In this document: piece after piece, positions 40,402 to 54,814 of the stretch
How positions within the stretch are numbered: the stretch's first letter is position 1
Layout: each line of letters opens with the position of its first letter
Origin: Blastocladiella emersonii ATCC 22665
Taxonomy: Eukaryota > Fungi > Blastocladiomycota
Direction: 5' to 3'
Assembly: GCA_025594325.1 (NCBI GenBank)
Contig: JANHCV010000002.1
Coordinates: 2,294,001 to 2,358,000 of the forward strand
DNA: 64,000 bases
Position numbers and translations under genes: made by a program
The notes under the pieces: model-generated
What the model was told of the DNA's origin: nothing
The model's input: only the letters and a program-made list of their open reading frames with translations
Databases searched by the model: none

Positions 40402-42417
40402 TTACTCAACAGCCTCAAGCTGCGCGGGCTTGACCAGCGGCGTGCGGTAGCTGACCTCGTAGCTGAAGAACTCGGGCATGAGGTTGATGCTCAGGCACGG
40501 CACCGCGACGAGGGCGCCGAGCCCCGTGTCGACGGTCGCCTTGGACACGACGGTGCCCGGCGCCGTTGACTTGTTCCCGACATTCCGCCGAGCCGCGTTG
40601 CTACCCTCGAGCGGCGAGACCGCGGGCGGCGCAAGCGGGCTGGCCTTAGCCGCGTCCGAGTCCCAGTCGCGGCGGCGCAGCGCGATGACGGGGACCGCGT
40701 ACCGCGACACGAACGGCATCTTGAACTTGTAGTGCTCCCACGCGCGCCGGTACTGGGCCCACGCCGGGTGCTGGTGGCGCCGCCGGAACACGCCGGCGAG
40801 CGCGGCCTCGTCCTCGCGGTCCATGTACCGCACGATCAGCTCGAACTGCGGCTTGGCCGCCGAGTCCTTGGCGGCGGCGGCGGTCTCGCGCTCCTTGCGC
40901 CGCGCCGCCTTGTTGGGTCCCTCGGACACGACGGCAGCGGCAGCCTCGGCCTCGCCTTCGGCGGAAACGAGCGCAATCGAGTTGCGCGGCGGCAGGTGCG
41001 ACGCGAGCGAGCGGTAGAACATGGCGAGCTGGAGCCGCGGGTCGTCGCCGCTGACCGTGGGCGGGGCGAGCTTGACGAAGAAGCGGTTGTCGAAGAGGAC
41101 GGGCGCGACGCGCGACAGCGGGATGCGGTCGCGGTTGCGGACCGAGGCAATGGGCGGCGCCCGCACAAACACCCAGTTCCCCGGCCCGTTGCGGTCGGGC
41201 CGCGGCGGGAGCACCAGCGACTTGCACAGGGACATGGTCTTGAACTCGTGCTCGCGCGGCGGCGGGACCCACCGGATCTGCGGCGGCGGGGTCGCCGGGT
41301 CGGCGGACGGTTCGGGCTCAGGCACCGCGTTGCCGTCGAGGCCGTACACGTAGTACGCGAGCATGGCGTCGCGGACCTGCGCGACCGACCCGATGGGCGG
41401 CGGGTACGCGCTGCAGTCGAGCCACCGGACGATAGCGCTGAGCGCGCTGGTCGCGAGGTGCGTGCGGTGGAACCAGTGGTCATGGTGCTTGGCGAGGTGC
41501 GGGAGGTTGAGGAACGCGGACCCGGTCAGCTCGTCCGTGAGGACCGACTCGGCGAGCACCTTGGCGGTGAACCCGTTGGCGCGCGTCGAGTACTCGCGCA
41601 TGTGATCACAGAACGTGGCGAGGCTGGCCTCGGACAGCATCGGGTGCGCGTTCGGGTCGGCGGACGCGGACGCGAGCACGCCGCGGATCACGTTGCGCTG
41701 GTAGTGCAGGTCGCGGTTCATGGGGTCCGTGACGGCGTCGATGCCGAGCGCGCGGCACGTCTCGACGAGCCGGTCCTTGGGCACCGACAGCAGCGGGCGC
41801 ACCAGCTTGACGTCGCGGTCGCGCGGGTGCTGCACCACGGGGTAGTCGGCGAGCCCGTGGGTCATGCCGCCGAGCCCGCCGAGCCCGCTGCCGCGCGCCA
41901 GCCGGTACAGGACCGTCTCGATCTGGTCGTTGAGGTGGTGCCCGACAAACAGCTTACTCGCGCCGTGCTCGCGGCACGCGTGCGCCAGCAGCCGGTACCG
42001 GTGCAGCCGCGCCTTGTCCTCGAGCTGCGCCGAGGGGAGCGCGTCGAGCGGCGTGTCGCGCCAGTCGACGGTCAGCACGTCGGCGGGGATCCCCTGCGCG
42101 CGGATCATGCCCTGCACGCGCACCGCCTCCTCGGTGCTCTCGGGCCGGATCTTGTGGTCGACGGTCAGCGCGTGCACGCGGCCCGGCGCCCACTGGTTCA
42201 GCAGGTACAGCAGCGCCATCGAGTCGGGGCCGCCCGACACGGCGACGGCTACACGCGCGCGGGGTCGTCGTTGGTGGATGTCCGTTGAAGCGAGAGGGAG
42301 GGGAGAGCCCGTACCCAGCTTCTCGGTGGGCGAGATGGCGATGCCCTTGAGCAGGCCGGCGAGCTCGCCGAGGCTCAGGGCCGTTGCGGCGGCTTTCCTC
42401 GCTGCGGCAGAATTCAT
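40402..42417 (-). CDS. tilS: tRNA(Ile)-lysidine synthetase homologue (PP-loop), probably mitochondrial
   Basis: Intron 42249-42314. AVAVSGGPDSMALL PP-loop, TVDHKIRPES, ARLHRY, GHHLNDQIETVLYRLARGSG, RPLL, DPMN...YQRNVIR. Confidence 0.88.
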   Translation of the reverse strand: MNSAAARKAAATALSLGELAGLLKGIAISPTEKLGTGSPLPLASTDIHQRRPRARVAVAVSGGPDSMALLYLLNQWAPGRVHALTVDHKIRPESTEEAVRVQGMIRAQGIPADVLTVDWRDTPLDALPSAQLEDKARLHRYRLLAHACREHGASKLFVGHHLNDQIETVLYRLARGSGLGGLGGMTHGLADYPVVQHPRDRDVKLVRPLLSVPKDRLVETCRALGIDAVTDPMNRDLHYQRNVIRGVLASASADPNAHPMLSEASLATFCDHMREYSTRANGFTAKVLAESVLTDELTGSAFLNLPHLAKHHDHWFHRTHLATSALSAIVRWLDCSAYPPPIGSVAQVRDAMLAYYVYGLDGNAVPEPEPSADPATPPPQIRWVPPPREHEFKTMSLCKSLVLPPRPDRNGPGNWVFVRAPPIASVRNRDRIPLSRVAPVLFDNRFFVKLAPPTVSGDDPRLQLAMFYRSLASHLPPRNSIALVSAEGEAEAAAAVVSEGPNKAARRKERETAAAAKDSAAKPQFELIVRYMDREDEAALAGVFRRRHQHPAWAQYRRAWEHYKFKMPFVSRYAVPVIALRRRDWDSDAAKASPLAPPAVSPLEGSNAARRNVGNKSTAPGTVVSKATVDTGLGALVAVPCLSINLMPEFFSYEVSYRTPLVKPAQLEAVE

Positions 42418-42606: not shown

Positions 42607-43369
42607 CTACGCCGACATTTCCGTCTTCTGCGCGAGCTCGCCTTGCGCCGCGGCAGCGGTCGGGCTGCTCGAGTCGGCGACGTGCTTGTTGTACTCGAGC
42701 TTGACGATCTTCACGTCCTCGCCCTCGCACTGGTACACGTACGCCGTGACGCGGGTGTCGACCACGTCGAGCAGCACAAAGCTCGGCGTCTGGTGGTGCG
42801 CTGGTGGCGGGGCGACGGACCCGTCGTCGAGGACCACGGGGGTCGTCGGGAACGCGTTCCCCTGCGGGCCACCGGTGCCCGTGGCCGACCCGGGGTTGAC
42901 GTAGAACCGTCCCTCGAACTCGAAGCAGTCGACGCCCGACGCCGTGGATCCGGACACGAGCACGTCGACGTCGAGCTGGCGCGCGGCGAGGGCGAGGGCC
43001 TCGGTGTCGTCGACGGGGACGAGCGAGTGACCGTGGACGAGCCCGATGCGCAGCGGGCCGACGTTCACGGTCTTGCACAGCGGCGACGCGCCCGCGCCCG
43101 ACGGCTGCAGCTGGTCAAACTCGCCGTGCACCATGTGCACCTGCGGCGCAATCGACCGCAGCCACTCGGCCGTGTCGGGCAGCGTCAGGTTGCCCGTGCA
43201 CAGCACCATGTGGATCTTGCCCGGCAGCAGCAGCTTGCGGAACGGCGCCGGAATGTCGACCGCACGGTGCGGGATGTGGAAGTCGCCGATCGCGAGAATG
43301 AGCTACACGAGCATGGTGTGAGCTCGGTGGTACTTGTGAGGTTCGTTGCATCGAGATACATGCCACCAT
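42607..43369 (-). CDS. VPS29: Vacuolar protein sorting 29 (retromer)
   Basis: LILAIGDFHIPHRA.DIP..FRKLL.PGKI..VLCTGNL, IGLVHGH, LDVDVLVSG, FYVNPGSATG, PSFVLLDV. Micro first exon (ATG or ATG GTG at 43369) spliced to the acceptor at 43303. Confidence 0.92.
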
Positions 43370-43576: not shown

Positions 43577-45495
43577 ATGCAATCGCGATCGACCCTGCTT
43601 CTGCAGCGCGAGCTGTATCGACTCGAGCAAGAACCCGTGTGGGTCCGTTCGCAGCGGGACTCGCTCTACCTTCCGAGGCTGATCACCGTGGTAGTGTTGC
43701 GCTAGGGCACTGAGATTGAACTGGTCGACAGCAACGTGCATCACTGGCGTGTGACGCTCGACGGCCTGCTCGAAACGTCATGGTCGGGCGCCCAGCTCGT
43801 CCTGGACGTCCAGTTCCCGTCGAGCTACGACCTCGATCCGCCGCTCGTCAGCTTCCTTACGATCCCGCAGCATCCCAACGGTACGTTACCGTTCTCACTG
43901 AACTCGGCGCACCACTAACGAACGCCCCTCCGCGGTCGCCAGTACGAGAAAAGGATGGCGCCGTCGTGTGCGCGCTGCTGCAGTACTGGGTGCCGGGAAC
44001 GACCATGGGCGCGCTGTTCACCACCATCCAACAACTACTCAGCGAACCGCTGCTCGACGACGACTGTCCCGCCAACTGGGCCGTGGCGCGCCTCGTGCAG
44101 CGACAACCCGACGAGTACCGACGGCGCGTCGCGGCCATGGTCAAGAAGAGCCAGGCGCTGTACGACCAGCGCCGGTGGGGTGCGTAACTTGCTCTCCTCA
44201 TCCCTCCGACAGCGTGCTGACCGCTCGATCGCGTAGAGGAGACGTTTTCGACGCTCGTCGCCACGCACCTGTACACCGAGCCGCCGCCTGTCTACCACCG
44301 CGCTTCACCTTCACCGCCGCCGCCCCAACGCGAGTCGCAGCAGGTGGAGACCATTCCCCCGCGCGAAGCTCCGCGCAAGCCGCGCATCCGGCGCCTACCC
44401 TTCGAGTCGTACCACGCGTCGTGGAGCAGCCTCGCGACCACTGCGCCGGGAAACGTCACGCGCATCCAGATCAAGGAGGCGGGCCGCCCGCAGTCTGCGT
44501 CCGCTGTCGACGGCTGCGGCGAGTCGGACGCGCGCACCCGGCTCGTCGGGATCCCGCGGCGGCGGGACATCGCGGCCGTGATCCCGCTGCGCGAGGGGAC
44601 CATGGTCGCGACCAAGCCCGGCACCGTGGCGCAGCGCGTCGCCATGTGTGTCTCTCGACACGATGCGGAGCGCGTGGTCGCACTGTACGTTCCATTTGAT
44701 CCCTTGGTTGGCGTGAACTGACGCTAGCGCGGGCCGTGTAGCGAGAACGAGATCCGACACGGCACCCTGCACGCGCCGACTGGCCCGCTGCCCAAGTCCG
44801 AGTCGGGCCGGTACTGGCTGATCCCCGGCCACTCGCCCGTCCCGTGCGGCACGATTCCCGACTCGCCCAAGCCGTCCGTCGCGTCGCTCGCCTCCGGCTC
44901 GGGCGTCATCCTCGAGATCCAGGGCACCCCGCCTCCACCGCTCCTCTCCGTCCTGCCCAACGCGCTCGGCCTCGACGCCAAGCTGGACCCGGGCCGCCGC
45001 ACTGTGTGCCAGCAGCACCACGCGCATCATCGCCACGGCCGGCGCGCGCCGACGCGTAAGATTCCCGCAGCGATGGCGGCGCACGACGAGTGGGGCGCCG
45101 CTGCCGCCGTGTCCGAGACCAGCTCCGATACGGGCACGTACACGCCGAGCGACCGGTGGACGCCGAGTCCGCCGGGCAGCATGCGGCGGCGGTCGCCCGA
45201 CACGGTACATCTCGCGCTTCCGCCGCTCGAGGTGCACGGCCATGGGTCGCGGTCGCCGTCACCCGTCGATGGAATGCGCCGGCGGACACGGCGCTCGAGT
45301 CGGAGTCGCAGTCGCAGCAGCACGCGGCGACCGGCAACGTTCCTCGGCCGCATCTTCCCCGAACAAAACCCGGTTGACGGATCGTTCCACTACTCGGCCG
45401 CAAAACATGACGGGATCGAGATTGAGCTCGATCACGACGAGGCGATCCTCGACTGGGCGCGGAATCTGACGCCGGAGCATGTGCTGGTTGATTGA
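43577..45495 (+). CDS. UBE2U: Ubiquitin-conjugating enzyme E2 U-like protein
   Basis: Multi-exon. MQSRSTLLLQREL, W..TLDGLLETSWSG, FLTIPQHPN|V...VVC, LLSEPLL. Downstream motifs PFESYHASWSSLATT and DEAILDWARNL resemble UBE2U-family C-terminal motifs recalled from memory. Confidence 0.7.
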
Positions 45496-45516: not shown

Positions 45517-48500
45517 TCATGTATGATTATCGCCACGGGTCGCCTGCTCGCGGTCGCTCCTGAGCATGAAGTATCGGCGGTGCGCCGACTCGAAGAACAG
45601 GTTGAGAACGGCTGACACGAGCGCCAGCATGAACAGCACGTTGATGGTGATGAAGATGCTCGCGTGCGCATGGTCCCAGTACAGGATCACGCGTTCGAGC
45701 AGGGCGCCCGCCAGAAACGCCGCAAGGATCGGGACGTGCACGCGCGGGTGCAGCCGCAGCGTGGTCATGGCAAGCAGCGTGGCGATGGCCTGGTGCGAGC
45801 TCGACTGGCGCAGCTCGTAGCTCGACGACACGAGGTAGATGAGCGTGTCCTGGACCAGCACCACGGCCAGCGCGATCAGAACATGGATCATGGCGTACCG
45901 GCCGAGTCGCTCGCCGTGAATCGAGGAAAACCGGAGCACGAGCAACACGGAGGAGTTGACGAGCATTTGCTGCAGCATCGGGTACCACCACTGCGTCACG
46001 ATCGGGAACGCGCCGAGGAGCCACGACCACCGTACGTGGCGGACATGGCCATGGTCGCCGCTCGTGGTCGCGGGCATCGACGTCGCGTCGCTGTTCGTCG
46101 CGGTATCCCTGGTAGCGGCGCCCTGCGTAATCCCGGCAATGATGAGCATCAGCGTGAGCGTGACAAGGTTCGACGCGGCCGTCAGCTGCATGCGCGTCCG
46201 CAGCTTGCGCAGCGAGTACGCGCGGTACTCGCTCTCGAGGGCCGGCGACGGGAACCGGTAGAAGAGCTCGCGGCGGACGTGGCGGAGCACTCGCAGGAAC
46301 TGAGCCAACACCGTTTTGCGGTGCGCGCCGTTCTGCTGGCCGCAGCGAGCACTCGACCTCGTACTGTTGGTCGCGGTTGACGTGGAGGACGACGCGACCT
46401 GCTGCTGCTGCTGCTGCCACTCGAGCGTTGCCGTCGGCGATCTCCTGTTGAGGAGCGAGACTGGTGTCGAGGTACCCGAAAACGAGCCGGGCTGCGTCGA
46501 GGCCATGGACAGGTACGTTGACGGGGCGGGCGAGATGGCCATAGTCTCGGTAGCGGTAATGATGGGCGAGCGCCAGTTGGACGTGGACCGGAGCAGGCTG
46601 CGGTTGATGCGGGGCGTGCCGACCTGCGAGCTGGTAGCGCTCGGGAACGGGGCGCTTGGGAGCGTGCCGTTGTCGGCGTTGCTGCGCGTCCCCGTTCCCG
46701 CGCGGAGCAAGGAGGGCGACGGCGGCGGCGGCGGAAGCTCGGCCTCGCTTGACGCCATGGCCACGGACGCGCCCGCCACGGACGAAACGGCATCGAGCTC
46801 GGTGCGCGAGACCGATTCGGCCGGCGTCGCCCAGATGTCGCATCCGGGCTCGCCGTTGTACACGCTTGGACACGAAGTCGCGGCGGACGAGGCCAGCGAC
46901 GACGCGGGCGCCGGCTGCATGAGCGCGCAGCGCATGTCGTCCGTCCACATGGCAAGAAACGCGCGGCCGTCGGCGTCCTGCGTCAGCGCGACGCTAGTCC
47001 ATGCTTCCGCGCTGGAGCTCCGCGGAACCGTTGGTGGCTGCATCTGCTCCTCGTCCAGCACGAGCGGCACGAGCTGCCACATGGATGCGGATGTGGGCGG
47101 ATCCGCGCGATCTGCCGCACCGTTGGTCGGCGAGCCCGAATCGGCGGTGCCGCTCGGCGGGGCAATGTACAGCAAGGCGGGCTGGAGGAGGACATGCTCG
47201 GGTAGCACCGCGCGCGCCCGATCCGACGACATGGTACCCGTGAGCCGGGCGACGACCCATGACGCATTGAGGTTGTTGAGCGGCGGATCCGAGGAGCTCA
47301 GCGGGCACGGGAACTCGGCGCTCGACTGCGAGAAGCGCGGCAGCGTCGCCAGCCGGCGAAGGCTGACAGCCGCAATGTCAAGCGTGGGACTTGGGACGAG
47401 GCCGCGGTGCGTCGCCGGCTCCTGCGTCAGGATCTCGTGGTGGTAGCGGTCGAGGATCGACAGCGGCGAGACCAGTGGGCCCAGAGACTCTTCGGATGAA
47501 AAGGCGGGGGTCTGCTGGGAACTCGGGGCCGTGGGCGAAGCAGCACCGCTGCCAGGCTCGCCCGTTGCGCTGCCGAACGCGCTGCTGATGCTGAGCGGCC
47601 GGCTCTGGATCTGCTTGAGCACGCCACCGTCATCGCCGAAGACCTACAAGCATGCCGCTATCGTCAGAAGTCGGCGAGTGATCTTGAGCGTCACCTAGTC
47701 GCGTACCTGCGCGTACACTCTGGGCGGGTCAACGCGAACGTTGGTCGTAGCGGCTCCCGCGGCGGCCGCTGGAGCATCGGGACGGCGCCGCGTGAAGTCC
47801 GCGAGCGACGAGGACTGGATGGTGATCGGCGGGACCGCGCGCGGCGGTGGGGCGGCGGCGGCAGGGACACGGCGCTGCTTCTCGGACGTCTGGCGCACGT
47901 TGAGGTAGAAGGACGCGCGGTGCAGCAGCTCGCGCTGGTACAGGGCGAAAGTCGACTTGACAAAGTCGTCGCTGAGGTTGAACGCGAACAGCCACACCCA
48001 CGCGAGCGGGTTCGACGAGAGCGAGTAGCCGAGGCTGACCGTGAACCCGACGAGGAACAGCGCGAGCGGCACCGACAGGCGGAACGGTAGGATCGACGCG
48101 GAAACAAGTAGGTACAGCGTGACGCTCGCGCTGCCCATCCAGTAGTTGCGGCCCGTGTCGATCCATTTGAGCGCGTGCTTGGCCACGGCGGCCAAGTCCG
48201 TATCGATGGCTCCGTCGCACAGGTCGTGGTTGGTGATCGGAGCGAAGAGGAGCGATTGGCCGGTCGTCGTGACCGTGCACATGATCGGACACAGCGCGCC
48301 GACAATATTGGTGATGGCGAGGCAGAAGAAGGACACGGTGACGATGATCCAGCGGCGCTGGTTCGTCCATTTGGTGAGCCTCGGAGCCAGCAGGGCAAGG
48401 ACGAGGAGGGCCGCGGGTGCCGCAAACATGGCCGTGACGATCCGCTGGCACTGGTCGCACTGGCCAACGATGGACGGACAAAGGTCGAGGACGTCGCGGA

Positions 48501-49616
48501 ACGCGCACGTCGAAAGCCACGAGATGAGCGCGGACAGGACCACGAAAAGAAGTGCACCACACTTCAAACGGTTCAGCGGTGAGTGAGTGACCTTGAGCGC
48601 GAAAAGAGACCGCGATAACGTACCGAGAGGATCGCCATCGGCAGCTTGAGGATTCGACTCGAGTACTCGGTGAACTTGGACTCAAGCACGGAGTTTTGGA
48701 ACCGTAGCGTCCTCATCGACAGAACGCGAGTCGCACCCGATGTAAGCACGGCCCATGCAGAGCCGAATAAACGCGAGCGGAGACCAGACATGAGCGCGGC
48801 CGTGGAAGCAAACGACGAGCGTCGCGAGGGCGACTCAATGCTGGACCGGCGCGGCCACCATGAAGAGGCGTCCAAGTCCTTGCGCGGGTGCTGCCGACTT
48901 GCGCGCCGTGAGGGCGGTGCCTCCGAGTGATCACGGCTCTGGGCGCTCGCAGCGGCGAGCTGGAGTTGGTTTGATTGGTCCGAGGTGCCGGGTATGTGAT
49001 TGGGCGCGGATGTCGCAGCGTCGAGACCAAGCACGGCGGGATCAAATACCTCGAGGTCGCTCAGCGCGAGGCCGGAGGTTGACAGGATGCCGGACAGCGA
49101 GCCAACAGCCAGTGGACGGCGAGCCGCCTGTCGCGCTGCAAACGACCCCGCGGATGATCGGCACGACCGAGAATGGTCAGGTGAATCGGGTGCCGTATCC
49201 CACGACGGCGTCTCGGCAAGCACGCTTTCTGACGTGGACGGCGAGGTGACGAGAGCCGCAAGCTTTTCGGCGAGCTCGTGCGGGGAGGCGGTGACAGAGA
49301 AGGAGCGAGCATAGTCGAGCTGTTCGCCGCGGCGGGCCGTGTCGAAGATGCGCGTGACGTGGAAGACGTTGTGGCCATGGTCGTCGGACGCGTTGGTCGC
49401 AATTGATCGCGTCGAAAAGTGCAAGATTGTGACCGCGTTTGGCTCATCGCGAACGGCAGCAACCGCTGCCGGTGTCCCGTCGAGCGTGCCTGGATCCGGA
49501 AGCGCACGAGTAGTGGGCGCCGTAACTCCAGCCGTGGTCAAATGTTCAAGTGGTTGTGCTGCCGCCAAATCTGGAGTAGGTTGATCCATGGCCGGGGTTA
49601 CATATGTAGTTGCCAT
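45517..49616 (-). CDS. 1324-aa membrane protein with two ~6-TM clusters resembling adenylyl-cyclase membrane anchors but no recognisable cyclase domain (paralogue A)
   Basis: Exons 49616-48624, 48561-47707, 47643-45517; phase-0 introns 48562-48623 and 47644-47706. Pre-TM motifs LRFQNSVLESKFTEY and YRFPSPALESEYRAY. Post-TM motifs RELLHRASFY and FESAHRRYFML. Confidence 0.8.
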
Positions 49617-50171
49617 GTGATGTGGCGTCTTTCCACAGAGCGTGAGAGAGCAAATCGCGACAGAGCGCACCAGGGACCCTCTCTTGATTTGAGTGCGGGT
49701 CTCCTTTCATGCGCTTGATCGGCGATAAAACGGACAAAACGCGAAGCCGCCTCGCACCCCTGCGCCCAGAGCGTCATGTCCACCCCCGTTTTGTCACGTC
49801 GGTTTTCGATGGTGAGCGCGCGTGTGTCTGTTGAACACGGGAGAGCCCCGTCTGTGCGGGTCGGCCCGGAACGCGTCTCCCAACAAACTCGCACGGCACA
49901 CGTGCTGGTTCGGAACTGCGGAACGTCGCGGAGCCGAGCGGGACCGCGCGCGTGAAAAACGGACGATCACTCGCGTTTAATCTGGGGACGCGAAGAAATG
50001 CCCTTGATACTGACGCGTTTCCGTCGGCGAGCACGAAGTGCGGCGAGGACGCGTTTCTGGTCACGTGAGTGGCGCAGCGCGTCGAAGTCGCAGCCCCGCG
50101 GACCACCGTTTCGTTGTCGACTGACGAATGGCTCGAGCGGTGCAAAATGATGTGTCATGTATGTAAAGGTG

Positions 50172-53100
50172 CTATGGTTGGACCGGGTCCCCAGCCCGGG
50201 TCCGCTGCCTGGCCACTGGCTCGCGGTCGCTCCTGAGCATAAAATACCGCCGGTGCGCCGACTCGAAGAACAGGTTGAGCACCGCCGAAACGAGCGCGAG
50301 CATGAACAGCACGTTGATGGTGATGAAGATGCTCGCGTGCGTGTGATCCCAGTACAGGATGGTCCGCTCAACCAGCGCGCCAGCGAGAAATGCCGCGAGA
50401 ATCGGGACGTGAACGCGCGGATGCAGCCGCAGCGTGGTCATGGCAAGCAGCGTCGCGATCACCTGGTGCGAGCTCGACTGGCGCAACTCGTAGCTCGACG
50501 ACACGAGGTGGATCAGCGTATCCTGGATGAGCACCATGGCGAGCGCGAACAGGACGTGGCCCATGGCGTACCGTCCGAGCCGCTCGCCGTGCATCGACGG
50601 AACGCGCAGAACCACGAGCACCGACATGTTGAGGACGAGGTGCTGCAGCATCGGATACCACCACTGCGTGATGACAGGGAACACGCCGACGAGCCACGAC
50701 CACCGCACGCGGCGCGCTTGGCTCTGACTGTCGCTCGGCAAAAGGTCGCCGTCCACGGTCCCAGCCGCGGCAGCGCCTCGCGTGCTGCCCGCGATGATGA
50801 GCATCAGCGACAGGGTAAGGAGGTTTGAAGCGGCCGTCAGCTGCATCCTCGACCGCAGCTTGCGCAGCGAGTACTCGCGGTACTCGTTCTCGAGCGCGTG
50901 CGACGGGAACGTGTAGAAGATCTCGCGCCGGATCTGGCGGAGCACCCGGAAGACCTGCACGACCGGCTTGCGCACCACGAGCAGCGCGCGATGCCGCCAT
51001 GCGTGGCGACGGCGGCGACGGGTTGACCCGGCCGCATCGGTACTGGTCGGTGGCGCGACCGATGCAACCTGAGGCTGGTGCTGTTGCCGCTCGAAAGTAG
51101 CCGTCGCCGAGACGGCACCGAGGAGCGGGGTCGGGGTGGACGCACCCGACGACGAGTCGGGCTGCGTCGACGACATGGACAGGTGCGGCGAAAGCGTAGG
51201 TGAGGTGGTCGTGGTGGTGGCCTGGATCGCGTCAACGGGCGAGCGCCAGTTGGGCGCCGACCGCAGCAGGCCCGTGTCGCTGCGCGGCGTGCCGACCTGC
51301 GAGCTGTTGCCGCTGGGCAGCGTATCAGTGCCGGGGTTACTGCGGCTTCCCGTTCCCGCGCTATACGAGAAGGGAGACAGCGGCGAGGACGCCGGCCTCG
51401 CTTCGGTCGGGGCCGCAGACGCAGCGTCCATCTCGGTGCGCGAGAGCGACTCGACCGGCGTCGCCCACATGTCGAACGCCTGGTCGCCGTCGGCCGCGCT
51501 CGATGACGTGGACGTTGACGAGGCGAGCGACGAGCCGAGCGCCGGGCAGAGCGAGGACTGCAGCAGCGCGCGGTTCACGTCGGCCGTCCACAGCGCGACG
51601 AGCGCCTGGCTGTCGTCCTGCGTCAGCGTCGCGCTGGTTCGCGCGCCGACACTCGCGTTCCGCGGCACCGTGATGGTCGTCTTGGACTTGCGGTCCACCT
51701 CCTCGCTGCCGTCCTCGTCCTCCGTGTCCTCTTCGTCGATCTCGAGCGGCACCATCTGCCACATGGACGCGGTCATGGGTTCACCAATGCGCTCCGCCGT
51801 CGCACCCGCTGCGGCCGACCCGCTCGCCGCCATGCCCAGGGTCCCGCCCTGGCTGCTCGCGGCGCGCACGCTCGACTCGTCGACGTGGCTCGCGGACGCA
51901 ATGTACAGCGTGGCGGCCTGGAGCTGCTCGACGAGGCGGCGGTCGAGCATCGTCGCCTGCGCGGGGTTCGACGCACGCGTGAAGCCCGTGTTGGGGTTCC
52001 CGTGCAGCGTCGTGAGGCCCGAGGTCAGCGTGCCAGCGAGCCCGGCGACGATCCATGACGAGTTGCTGAAGTTGTCGACCGACGGGTGCGGCGAGCTGGG
52101 CATGCGCGGGAACTCGGTGCTCGACTGCGAGAAGCGTGGCAGCGTCGCGAGCCGGCGCAGGCTGATGGCTGTGATGTCGAGCGTCGCGCTCGGGACGAGG
52201 CCGGTGAACGGGCGGAGCATGGTCGGGCCCTGCATCATCATGCTGAGCTCGTGGTGGTTGAGGTCGAGGATTGACAGCGGCGCGACGAGCGGGCCGGGAG
52301 GGCGGTCGCCGTCGGGCTCGTCCAGCGTGAACTTGAGGTGCGGGAACATGTGCTGGTGTGGGTGCGGGGCCGCCGTCCCGCTCGAGCTGCTGCCGGATTC
52401 GATGGTCAGTCCGTCGAGAAGACCGCTTCGAATCGGTTCGAGCGCAGCACCTTCGTGGCCAGGCGACTACAACGGAGAGATCCAGGTTAGGACGCAGGGA
52501 CGGAGAGGCACAGCCACCGTCGAGCGCACCGGCTTGCCCAGGAATCCTGGCTTGAACTGCAGCGCGCCGACGCGCACGTTGGTCGAGGTGACGCTGACCA
52601 CGGTAGTCGGGACGTCGAACAGGTTGCGCGCGGCGATATCAGCCGTGGACGAGGACTGAATCGTGATTGGCGGGACCGCGCGCGGCGGTGGGGCGGCGGC
52701 AGTAGAGACACGGCGCTGCTTCTCGGACGTCTGGCGCACGTTGAGGTAGAAGGACGCGCGGTGCAACAGCTCGCGCTGGTACAGCGCAAACGTCGACTTG
52801 ACAAAGTCGTCGCTGAGGTTGAACGCGAACAGCCACACCCACGCGAGCGGGTTGGACGACAGCGCGTACCCAAGGCTGACGGTGAACCCGACGAGGAACA
52901 GCGCGAGCGGGACCGACAGGCGGAAGGGCAGGATCGACGCCGAGACGAGGAGGTACAGCGTGACGCTCGCGCTGCCCATCCAGTAGTTGCGGCCCGTGTC
53001 GATCCACTCGAGCGCGTTCTCGGCCACGGCCGCCATGCTTGAGGCCTTGTCGCCGGGACACAGCTCGCCCATCGAGATGGGCGCGAGCAGCAGCACCTGG

Positions 53101-54814
53101 CCCGTAGTCGCGACCGTGCACAGGATCGGGCACAGCGCGCCGACGATGTTGGTGACGGCGAGCACGACGAAGGCCATCGTGACGAGCACCCACCGGCGCA
53201 TGTTGGTCCATTTGGTGAACTTGGGTGCGAGAAGTGCGAGCACGATGAGGGCCGCGGGCGCGATGAGCATGGCCGTGACGAGGCGCTGGCATTGGTCGCA
53301 CCGGCCCATGACCTTCGGGCAGAGCTCGAGCGCCTCACGGAACGCGACCGACGACAGCGAGGAGATGAGCATGGACAGGAGCACGTAGGTGAGTGCACCC
53401 CACTACACGTCGCGCAACCGGGTCAGAGCTGTGCGGAAGCTGACGACCATGCATCGCGTACCGCGAGAATCTCCATGGGCAGCTTGAGAATCCGGCTCGA
53501 GTACTCGGTGAACTTGGACTCGAGGATGGGCCGCAGGAACCGCAGCGTCGACATGGACAGGATCCGCGTGTTGCCCGCCGCGAGCACGGTCCACGCCGAC
53601 CCGAGAAACCGCGACGGCAGCGCCGACACGAGGGCGGCCGTCGACGCAAACGACGAGCGCCGAGACGGTGACGTGGCGCTGGACCGGCGCCGTCTCGAGG
53701 TCGCGTCCGAGTCCCTGCGCGACGACGGCGGATGCGGGTGACTGGTGCGCCGCGACGGCGGCGCTTCCGGGTGCTCGCGGCGCGTAGCAGCGTGGTGAGG
53801 CGGGCTCGCTGGCGCGGCCGCCTCGATGAGCTCCGGCTCCACGGCCCCGAGCCCGAGCACGGCCGGGTCGAGCACTTCGGGATCGCTCAGCGCGAGGTCC
53901 GGCGTTGAGAAAATGTCGGACAGCGAGCTCGCCGCCGAGGTTGCGCGGGTGTTGGGCTCGGAGAGCTGGGCGGCGAACGAGCCCGCGGACGACCGCCGCG
54001 ACCGAGCGGGCGGCGAGGCGCGAGCAATGTCGGGCGAGTCGGGCGCCGTCTTCCACGTCGGCGACTCGGGGAGACCGCTACCGGCTTCGGACGACGGACA
54101 CGTCGAGAGCGAGGTGGGCGTCACCGGCAGCATGCCCGAGAGCTCGAGCGGCGACGCGGTCCCAGACAGCGAGCGCGAGTAGCCACCGCCCAGCTGCAGC
54201 TCGGCGCCGCGGCGGTCGACGTCGGCGACGCGCGACACCTGGACCGTTTCATGGCCGTGGCCGCTGGACGCGTTGGTCATGATCGACCGGGTCGAGAAGT
54301 GCAGCACCGTGGCCGTGTTGGTTTCGTCGCGGACAGCAAAGACTGGGCCAGTCAAGGCTTCGGGGGAGTGCGATGCCGCCGTGGCCGTGGACCGCGTCGA
54401 TGGCCGCCGCGGCGGGACGAGCGATGGCGTGGTCCCGCTGCGCGGCGGGCCCAGGTTCGGGACACTCGATGTTGTCGTCGGGACGTTAACCGAGCCCACC
54501 AGCTCCTTTGCCGATGCGCGATGGGCGGGAACGGCCAGAGAGCGGACGTGGCCAGCGGAGTTGTTGAGCGACGCTCCGCCGCTGCCGCCGCCGCCATACG
54601 ATCCAGCGCTCACGCCGAGGCGAACGGCCGCCGTGGCCGAGACCGCGTCCGTCGCGACAGCCGTGCCAATCACGCCGTCGGAGCGGATCGCGCTGGCACG
54701 GCGCAAGAAGACATGCCGGATCCGCGCAGCCGCGCGCGTCGCCCGTGGCGGCAGCGCCGGTTCCGCTGGCTGCATCTGGTGCGCTGACGCCGGGGCCGGG
54801 TCAGGTCGATCCAT
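50172..54814 (-). CDS. 1506-aa tandem paralogue B of the 2x6-TM cyclase-anchor-like protein
   Basis: Exons 54814-53462, 53402-52530, 52466-50172; introns 53403-53461 and 52467-52529. Same intron placement and near-identical TM segments as paralogue A. Confidence 0.8.

Follow-up and report, generated by a model that had tools for sequence, protein, structure and literature searches.

The two genes in tandem at positions 45517-54814 of the DNA analysed here raise the question of whether the membrane part of an adenylyl cyclase can occur as a protein of its own. The window, which is the whole 64,000-nucleotide stretch of the Blastocladiella emersonii genome that was analysed, carries in this interval two paralogous three-exon genes on the minus strand, as judged from open reading frames (ORFs) and splice sites. 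The interval fits them exactly, with the stop codon of the distal gene (gene A) at 45517-45519 and the ATG of the proximal gene (gene B) at 54814. All six exons are open, and the four introns are phase-0, have GT..AG boundaries and are 59-63 nt long. The identity between genes A and B is 77% in exon 2, about 85% in transmembrane (TM) cluster 2, and 55% in both exon 1 and the whole of exon 3, a sequence likeness far above chance level. The pair of neighbouring paralogues in the original prediction was thus recovered from ORFs, splice sites and exon identities. Only about 550 bp lie between the gene B stop and the gene A start, and the transcript ends of both genes are inferred. The features are as follows.

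43577..45495, plus strand: UQ_con gene (E2 ubiquitin-conjugating enzyme), from UQ_con matches on plus-strand ORFs; public call of 544 aa, PF00179
45517..49616, minus strand: gene A, distal paralogue, about 1,324 aa, from ORFs and splice sites
48624-49616, minus strand: gene A exon 1 (alternative ATG at 49589), followed by intron 1 at 48562-48623
47707-48561, minus strand: gene A exon 2, followed by intron 2 at 47644-47706
45520-47643, minus strand: gene A exon 3, followed by the stop codon at 45517-45519
47857..48701, minus strand: gene A TM cluster 1 (TM1-6), spanning intron 1; pre-TM1 helix motif at 48663-48701, post-TM6 helix motif at 47908-47931
46330..47856, minus strand: gene A cytosolic linker, about 490 aa, S/P/T/A-rich, spanning intron 2
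45520..46329, minus strand: gene A TM cluster 2 (TM7-12); pre-TM7 helices (motif at 46216-46254), post-TM12 helix motif at 45568-45591
50172..54814, minus strand: gene B, proximal paralogue, about 1,506 aa, from ORFs and splice sites
53462-54814, minus strand: gene B exon 1, followed by intron 1 at 53403-53461
52530-53402, minus strand: gene B exon 2, followed by intron 2 at 52467-52529
50175-52466, minus strand: gene B exon 3, followed by the stop codon at 50172-50174
52698..53539, minus strand: gene B TM cluster 1, spanning intron 1; motifs at 53501-53539 and 52749-52772
50175..50984, minus strand: gene B TM cluster 2; motifs at 50871-50909 and 50241-50264
48714..50246, minus strand: "intron" of the public model H9P43_002691, 1,533 nt, junction mapped

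In GenBank, genes A and B are merged into a single model (H9P43_002691; 2,504 aa) through an unsupported 1.5-kb intron, which takes in the last 24 codons and the stop of gene B, the spacer (about 550 bp) and gene A up to codon 301. The public protein P0001 agrees exactly with gene B through exons 1 and 2 and as far as codon 740 of exon 3, and with gene A over the last 30 codons of exon 1 and all of exons 2 and 3. Two genes are favoured over the fused model because of the selection analysis and the architecture of the family, both given below.

No PF00211 or other Pfam cyclase domain was detected at E ≤ 1 in any exon of genes A and B, and no cyclase match was found in the ORFs downstream of them. 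No Pfam domain of any kind was found in either gene or in 15 relatives, in agreement with the claim that no class III cyclase follows either cluster. A missed cyclase exon, which had been named beforehand as one of two findings that would overturn the reading, is argued against by the genomic DNA. The UQ_con gene is convergent with gene A and its 3' end lies 21 bp from the gene A stop, so that there is no space for a downstream cyclase exon; gene B is followed by the short spacer, and no downstream ORF has a cyclase match. The layout of the genome excludes a hidden catalytic exon. Without a catalytic domain, proteins A and B are unable to make cAMP or cGMP themselves.

The layout described from the sequence alone, with two six-helix clusters per paralogue, each bracketed by two motifs, and a stop about 20 aa past the last helix, held in every part. 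Six long helices were present in each of the two gene A clusters modelled with AlphaFold2, and the clusters are motif-bracketed in both genes. The motif F-x4-LE-x2-[FY]-x2-Y occurs once ahead of each of the four TM clusters, E-x3-R-x2-F occurs once behind each, and neither occurs elsewhere in those exons. An alignment of 10-15 family members has few invariant columns, and they include the E, R and F of these motifs. From the last motif to the C-terminus there are 18 aa in the gene A product and 24 aa in that of gene B. Lysines and arginines on the inside outnumber those on the outside by 14 to 4 and by 20 to 3, in line with the positive-inside rule and with a topology that has the N-terminus inside. 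TM6 and TM12 each run on into the cytoplasm as a conserved helix of about 20-25 residues, which is less than the full helical domain of animal-type transmembrane adenylyl cyclases (tmACs). The strongest conservation is found on the cytoplasmic face, where it falls on the juxtamembrane helices and on the TM10-11 turn (TTLRLHPRVH in gene A), and the predicted outer loops of TM cluster 1 carry six conserved cysteines. The N-terminal regions show an enrichment of RRxS sites. Across the family, the linker can be aligned only at one short motif, L-x-TLPR-x4-S; no conserved globular island was found in it, and the gene A linker had no Pfam match.

The AlphaFold2 models of gene A, built from shallow alignments of 10-15 sequences, were confident, with a pLDDT of 79.9 and a pTM of 0.72 for cluster 1 and a pLDDT of 84.7 and a pTM of 0.75 for cluster 2. 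Each was compared exhaustively with 48,161 representative solved PDB chains, and the same three best matches were obtained for both: the ImcA membrane domain, AC5 and AC9. AC8 was likewise ranked among the first for each cluster. Over the two clusters together, Z was 14.8-15.7 for ImcA, 12.6-13.7 for AC5 and 12.9-15.6 for AC9, where a Z near 13 for helical bundles is barely above the range of common arrangements. For cluster 1, the values were 15.7 for ImcA (rmsd 2.9 Å, 204 aa), 13.7 for AC5 and 12.9 for AC9, and designed four-helix bundles get to Z 11. For cluster 2, AC9 scored 15.6 and 13.4, ImcA 14.8 (212 aa), AC5 12.6 and AC8 12.1, and the next unrelated chain was at 8.6-9.1. Overall, the tmAC matches (AC5, AC8 and AC9) had Z values of 10.9-15.6 and rmsd values of 3.1-4.6 Å over 184-217 residues. 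A Foldseek TMq of at least 0.4 was reached by AC5, AC8, AC9 and ImcA only. The match to Rv1625c/Cya (PDB 7yzk) was weak (Z 6.5-7.0 over about 155 residues). Since the alignments to the cyclase anchors (about 200 residues) span all six helices together with both juxtamembrane helices, each bundle is predicted to have the hexahelical membrane-anchor fold of nucleotide cyclases (AC5/8/9 and ImcA). The expected superposition of the TM clusters on cyclase anchors was therefore seen in the predicted models. The bacterial GGDEF anchor fits the predicted fold as well as the tmACs do.

The profile searches called for by the original prediction gave a different result. No match to AC_N (PF16214), Adcy_cons_dom (PF06327) or MASE8 (PF20968) was obtained by hmmscan in the exons and 10 family members, and the family profiles had no cyclase match among PDB sequences, in both searches even at E ≤ 10. 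Language-model neighbours include AC_N clusters, and MASE8 clusters at 0.86-0.92. The proposed resemblance to animal-type tmACs thus stands for the predicted fold and the 2x6-TM layout and fails for a sequence or profile link; kinship of the family with tmACs is not detectable at the sequence level, and the link is one of predicted fold only.

Like the tmACs (AC1-9), the fungal proteins have two six-helix clusters per chain with the N-terminus inside, and the predicted bundle superposes on the tmAC structures (AC5, 8sl3/8sl4; AC8, 8buz; AC9, 6r3q/7pd4/9u3q), a match that takes in the cytoplasmic helix ahead of TM helix 1 of each bundle and the helical extension beyond TM helix 6. The positions of the bracketing motifs around each cluster presumably agree with those in tmACs. 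In contrast to tmACs, the C1 and C2 cyclase domains are absent, the cytoplasmic helices are shorter than a full helical domain, only about 20 residues follow the second cluster, about 470-500 aa of disordered linker take the place of C1, and cluster 1 has a conserved cysteine-rich outer cap. Rv1625c/Cya of Mycobacterium tuberculosis and MASE8-type anchors likewise have a six-helix anchor N-terminal to a signalling helix, but Rv1625c has a class III cyclase domain, and the fungal proteins have neither this domain nor a Pfam MASE8 match. Mycobacterial Cya is the proposed ancestor of tmACs. For both clusters, the top structural match, or one close to the top, is ImcA of Pseudomonas aeruginosa (PDB 8wcn). 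It differs in being a bacterial, homodimeric six-TM diguanylate cyclase with a single module and a GGDEF output domain, whereas each fungal chain carries two modules that have diverged from one another and lacks an output domain. The TM domain of ImcA is required for its activity and for binding of its partner IsmP (PMC10904736).

The search of 1.84 billion proteins recovered 15 relatives, all from Blastocladiomycota, all annotated "hypothetical protein" and none with a cyclase domain found. The family has been retained in Blastocladiella, Allomyces and Catenaria, three genera in all, and has grown to about 11 copies in B. emersonii. Each full-length relative has two clusters, and most of these relatives end 15-45 aa past the RRYF motif. 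No paper on the family was found. The family, whose proteins are predicted to have 12 helices, appears specific to Blastocladiomycota and, as had been suspected, undescribed. The dN/dS ratio between genes A and B was 0.25-0.36 in the TM clusters (dS about 0.5), 0.50 in the gene A linker and 0.28 over 294 codons of gene A exon 1, indicating purifying selection on the TM clusters and on exon 1.

These data bear on whether the genes are correctly delimited and functional. It is very improbable that the public annotation is correct and that one 2,504-aa protein with four six-helix clusters is spliced across 1.5 kb. The GT..AG pair is present at the junction and the reading frame is kept, but the annotation is ab initio only, made without RNA, and its intron is about 25 times longer than the four clear local ones. 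The donor, GTATTT, falls within the most conserved C-terminal motif of the family, and over the 9 codons past it, gene B has only synonymous differences from gene A. The 294 "intronic" codons of gene A exon 1 that are under selection are open and homologous to gene B exon 1, and the two-cluster architecture of the relatives also speaks against fusion. Still less credible is that the genes are decaying former cyclases, functionless pseudogenes in the making. This would account for the missing catalytic domains and for linkers that are long, of low complexity and relatively high in dN/dS; it conflicts with the six open exons, with the low ratios in the TM clusters at that dS, and with a family that survives in three genera, its motifs and cysteines invariant, and numbers about 11 copies in B. 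emersonii.

The proteins might instead be unrelated, lineage-specific 12-TM proteins, such as a transporter, a channel or a structural membrane protein, with a generic six-helix-bundle similarity to cyclases. The missing sequence and profile link would then be expected, helical bundles often score middling Z values, and the best Atlas match was a bacterial six-TM GGDEF cluster with a TM-score of only 0.55, no AC cluster being among the matches listed. However, two independently modelled domains picked the same three cyclase anchors from all chains compared, with a gap of 3.5-7 Z units above the next chain for cluster 2, and alignments of more than 200 residues with both juxtamembrane helices were obtained for cyclase anchors alone. 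Transporters were missing from the upper ranks of both exhaustive fold searches, the exons and the 15 relatives had no match to a transporter Pfam domain, and the bracketing motifs are the most conserved positions; a generic similarity is therefore improbable. A role as trans-acting regulatory subunits or decoys is unlikely, though less so. Such proteins would oligomerise with real membrane cyclases and tune or sequester them, not signal alone. The shared predicted fold, the dimers of AC5 (PDB 8sl4), the binding of IsmP through the TM region of ImcA (PMC10904736) and the conserved juxtamembrane coiled-coil stub are compatible with this, and the cyclase repertoire of B. emersonii is diversified, including multi-TM tandem-domain adenylyl cyclases (PMC9730499), with 17 PF00211 genes, some with many TM helices. 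On the other side, both halves are already in one chain, so that no unpaired half remains, and no cyclase gene is co-localised within the window.

The conservation on the cytoplasmic face and the six conserved outer cysteines suggest a non-enzymatic sensor or scaffold. On balance, genes A and B are probably separately transcribed tandem duplicates encoding non-enzymatic 12-helix sensors or scaffolds with the cyclase-anchor fold. Each protein would consist of a disordered, RRxS-rich cytosolic N-terminus, a six-helix bundle, the long disordered linker and a second bundle, at which it ends. The proteins may read a cue inside the membrane, or at the outer loops of bundle 1 with their cysteine staples, and hand it on to the strongly conserved cytoplasmic face. 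Four juxtamembrane helices, two of them being the cyclase coiled-coil stub, would make up this face together with the TM10-11 turn. This face, together with the phosphorylatable disordered regions, may engage partners in trans.

The membrane domains of tmACs have been argued to be receptors in their own right (PMC11606603, PMC4821796, PMC12414865). Two neighbouring enzyme-less membrane proteins of the cyclase type offer a natural test of this poorly understood membrane part alone. As a more tentative proposal, which we consider possible but doubtful, the cyclase-type 12-helix domain may in blastoclad fungi be an autonomous receptor that needs no covalently attached cyclase and senses a lipid or another small cue, either at the membrane or at the outer cap with its disulfide staples. 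The conserved cytoplasmic helix stub and the phosphorylated disordered arms would carry the signal to partners in trans, among which may be cyclases or phosphodiesterases of the fungus itself. In that case, what serves as the "anchor" in animal adenylyl cyclases would descend from, or be able to revert to, a free-standing receptor.

The tandem pair consists of a distal paralogue, gene A, and a proximal paralogue, gene B, each built from three long ORFs separated by short phase-0 introns of 59 to 63 nt, with GTACG or GTGCG donors and AG acceptors. The spliced junctions come from sub-ranges of the public product H9P43_002691, which agree exactly with the exon models of both genes.

Features of the locus (window positions)
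40402-42417, minus strand: TilS-like PP-loop ATPase (ATP_bind_3)
42607-43209, minus strand: VPS29-like gene (Metallophos_2)
43577-45495, plus strand: E2 ubiquitin-conjugating enzyme gene (UQ_con), convergent, annotated as 544 aa with a long tail
49616-48624, 48561-47707 and 47643-45520, minus strand: exons of gene A (distal), about 1,324 aa
48100-48400 (gene A exon 2) and 52940-53240 (gene B), minus strand: six cysteines, in the TM1-2 and TM3-4 loops
48714-50246, minus strand: intron of H9P43_002691, 1,533 nt, GTATTT donor to AG
54814-53462, 53402-52530 and 52466-50175, minus strand: exons of gene B (proximal), about 1,506 aa
55270-56100, minus strand: malonyl-CoA ACP transacylase-like gene (Acyl_transf_1)

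Each protein carries two hydrophobic clusters (cluster 1, TM1-6; cluster 2, TM7-12) joined by a disordered linker. The bracketing motifs of the original prediction were confirmed: F-x4-LE-x2-[FY]-x2-Y occurs once ahead of each of the four clusters and E-x3-R-x2-F once behind each, and neither occurs elsewhere in those exons. In the family alignments, few columns are invariant, and they include E, R and F of these motifs. The predicted count of about six helices per cluster was borne out by AlphaFold2 models showing six long helices each, and the end of the protein, placed about 20 aa past the last helix, was found 18 and 24 residues after the final motif in the two proteins. Lysine plus arginine counts, inside versus outside, were 14 versus 4 and 20 versus 3, which by the positive-inside rule places the N-terminus, linker and C-terminus in the cytosol. 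The paralogues share 77% identity in exon 2 (TM cluster 1), about 85% in TM cluster 2, and 55% in both the N-terminal exon and the whole of exon 3. Both genes are intact and under selection.

GenBank joins the two genes in one model, H9P43_002691 (KAI9188300.1, 2,504 aa, "hypothetical protein"), which would make them a single spliced gene. The model, whose annotation source is ab initio only, exits gene B at ...ESAHRR and re-enters gene A 30 codons before the end of exon 1, omitting 24 codons from the end of gene B and 301 from the start of gene A. However, 294 of the skipped gene A codons form an open frame that is homologous to gene B exon 1 and evolves under purifying selection (dN/dS 0.28), and the nine codons past the GTATTT donor differ from gene A only synonymously. 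The long intron is also about 25 times the local norm, and the full-length relatives have two clusters, most of them stopping 15 to 45 residues past the RRYF motif. The single-gene reading is thus very probably wrong and H9P43_002691 very probably an ab initio mis-merge of two genes, whose transcript ends we infer. A correction of this public annotation is a by-product of the analysis.

The original prediction held that no class III cyclase motifs follow either cluster, and at E<=1 none of the six exons matched a Pfam domain. A set of ten downstream ORFs beyond gene A also had no match. A catalytic exon missed downstream was sought in the ORFs and the genome layout and was not found: about 550 bp of AT-richer sequence separate the gene B stop from the gene A start, and the convergent UQ_con gene ends 21 bp from the gene A stop codon, so that no room is left for such an exon. 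Genes A and B encode no catalytic domain. The 21-bp gap also means that the 3' UTRs of gene A and the UQ_con gene must overlap. Beyond gene A, the next genes on the same strand are the VPS29-like and TilS-like genes. The neighbours are of housekeeping type, and no signalling gene was found clustered with the pair. The public record also places a channel gene of RSN1/OSCA type upstream of gene B, at a distance of about 3.5 kb.

The clusters of gene A were modelled one at a time with AlphaFold2 from family alignments of 10 to 15 sequences (cluster 1, pLDDT 79.9 and pTM 0.72; cluster 2, pLDDT 84.7 and pTM 0.75), and both models were structurally aligned with each of the 48,161 representative PDB chains, with no Foldseek prefilter. 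For cluster 1, the top match was the six-TM diguanylate cyclase ImcA (8wcn; Z 15.7, rmsd 2.9 A, 204 aa), followed by human AC5 (8sl3; Z 13.7, 209 aa, residues 217-434) and AC9 (6r3q; Z 12.9, 203 aa). The rows below these three aligned over just 146 to 155 residues or so, and alignments of more than 200 residues across model residues 1-272 were obtained with cyclase anchors only. For cluster 2, ImcA again led (Z 14.8), ahead of AC9 (Z 13.4, rmsd 3.3 A) and then AC5 (Z 12.6), with the next chain at Z 9.1. When the top Foldseek chains for cluster 2 were re-aligned, 12 consecutive cyclase entries (AC9 up to Z 15.6, ImcA, AC5, and AC8 at Z 12.1) preceded a drop to Z 8.6. Foldseek E-values were flat for these bundles (0.04 to 2) and uninformative; the cyclase anchors were separated from the rest by the Foldseek probability and TM-score columns and by an independent aligner. 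In Foldseek, only AC5, AC8, AC9 and ImcA reached a TMq >= 0.4. The expected superposition on cyclase anchors was thus obtained, with AC5, AC9 and ImcA leading for both predicted models, and both halves are predicted to adopt the hexahelical cyclase-anchor fold, twice per chain.

The fold match is common to eukaryotic tmACs (transmembrane adenylyl cyclases) and bacterial six-TM GGDEF anchors, and the fold alone fits either as the nearest kin. In having both bundles in one chain, the fungal proteins follow the tmAC layout. The mycobacterial Cya/Rv1625c (7yzk), the proposed ancestor of tmACs, matched both fungal clusters far less well, at Z 6.5 to 7.0, in contrast to Z 11 to 15.7 for AC5, AC8, AC9 and ImcA. 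No AC cluster was among the matches listed by an Atlas shape search, the best of which was a six-TM GGDEF cluster at a TM-score of 0.55. By protein language model, AC_N and MASE8 clusters are among the neighbours.

The original prediction had also looked to AC_N-type and cyclase profiles, and these gave no sequence-level link to cyclases: in ten family members neither AC_N nor MASE8 was matched by Pfam at E<=10. PDB sequence searches with both clusters and family profiles returned noise only (beta-lactamase, herpesvirus gL). No kinship to cyclases was found in these sequence comparisons. The motifs flanking the clusters presumably resemble those of real tmACs. Comparison of cluster 1 with cluster 2 by hhalign aligned the 29-column pre-TM motif alone (probability 37%), which suggests an internal duplication of the two halves.

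A profile of cluster 2, run exhaustively with HMMER against 1.84 billion representative proteins, yielded 15 proteins in all, each a "hypothetical protein" of Blastocladiomycota and none with a Pfam domain. B. emersonii accounts for ten gene models, most of them in tandem groups (H9P43_005694-96, 005802, 005812-13, 005816, 002658 and 002691, the last being the pair studied here), and has about 11 family copies; Allomyces javanicus contributes one and Catenaria anguillulae five. Word-indexed searches, whose length window and word cut are ill-suited to such proteins, gave 0 matches with exon 3 and four proteins, all already known, with the family alignment. The published survey of B. emersonii cyclases was searched by the cyclase domain PF00211 and could therefore not have seen an anchor-only family (PMC9730499). 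No literature description of such catalytic-domain-free proteins was found, in keeping with the suggestion that the family might be undescribed; the family is narrow and appears undescribed. Two members on another contig are irregular. H9P43_005816 (1,781 aa) has the post-TM12 motif twice, at residues 1265 and 1484, suggesting another mis-merged or partly duplicated model. H9P43_005694 (274 aa) has about 20 residues between the post-TM6 and pre-TM7 helices, so the linker is either dispensable or lost through annotation.

Family-wide conservation is highest on the cytoplasmic face. It peaks at the end of TM6 and its extension (FNL-DD..KS...LYQRELL-R--F), the pre-TM7 helices (E-FY-FP ... E--Y--YY--KL--RM), the TM10-11 turn (TTLRLRPR-H) and the TM12 extension (FES--RRYF-L). 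In cluster 1, six cysteines are near-invariant. They all fall on the predicted outer side, in the patterns CP-x5-C-x2-C after TM1 and CP-x2-C...C after TM3. Since the model also forms a small beta bridge at these loops, cluster 1 likely has a disulfide-stapled outer cap.

The linker, of about 470 to 500 aa, lies at the position of C1, the catalytic domain that follows TM6 in true tmACs. This stretch is conserved between genes A and B, but family-wide it is unalignable except for one short linear motif, L-x-TLPR-x4-S, the sole linker element kept in all ten full-length members (about 47150-47200 in gene A and the corresponding stretch of gene B; RRLATLPRFSQSS in both). We examined, and discarded family-wide, the possibility that the linker holds a degenerate C1 domain. 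The L-x-TLPR-x4-S motif is a candidate docking or phosphorylation site. In the N-terminal disordered regions (48624-49616 and 53462-54814, minus strand), PKA-type RRxS sites are enriched, with three in gene A (shuffle P 0.016) and eight in gene B (shuffle P<0.0005); most lie no more than about 100 residues from TM1. The linkers of both genes have no RRxS sites.

The products of genes A and B may be non-enzymatic sensors or scaffolds, with the conserved cytoplasmic face and the phosphorylatable disordered arms as their output. In a closely related alternative, they would regulate true cyclases in trans, of which B. emersonii has 17. A receptor role for the family is plausible, because the membrane domains of tmACs and Rv1625c have published evidence as ligand receptors (PMC11606603, PMC12505454, PMC4821796, PMC12414865). 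Chimeras of CqsS and Rv1625c have been made in such work (PMC4821796). The role of the 12-helix adenylyl cyclase membrane domain beyond anchoring has been open since 1989, a "signal transduction blind spot" (PMC12414865), and this domain was recently claimed to be a lipid receptor (PMC11606603). A predicted fold kept under purifying selection in about 11 copies without a catalytic domain implies an independent function for the membrane module. The family is natural material for seeking ligands and cytoplasmic partners without an enzyme attached, and it enlarges the signalling repertoire of B. emersonii, a source organism for optogenetics.
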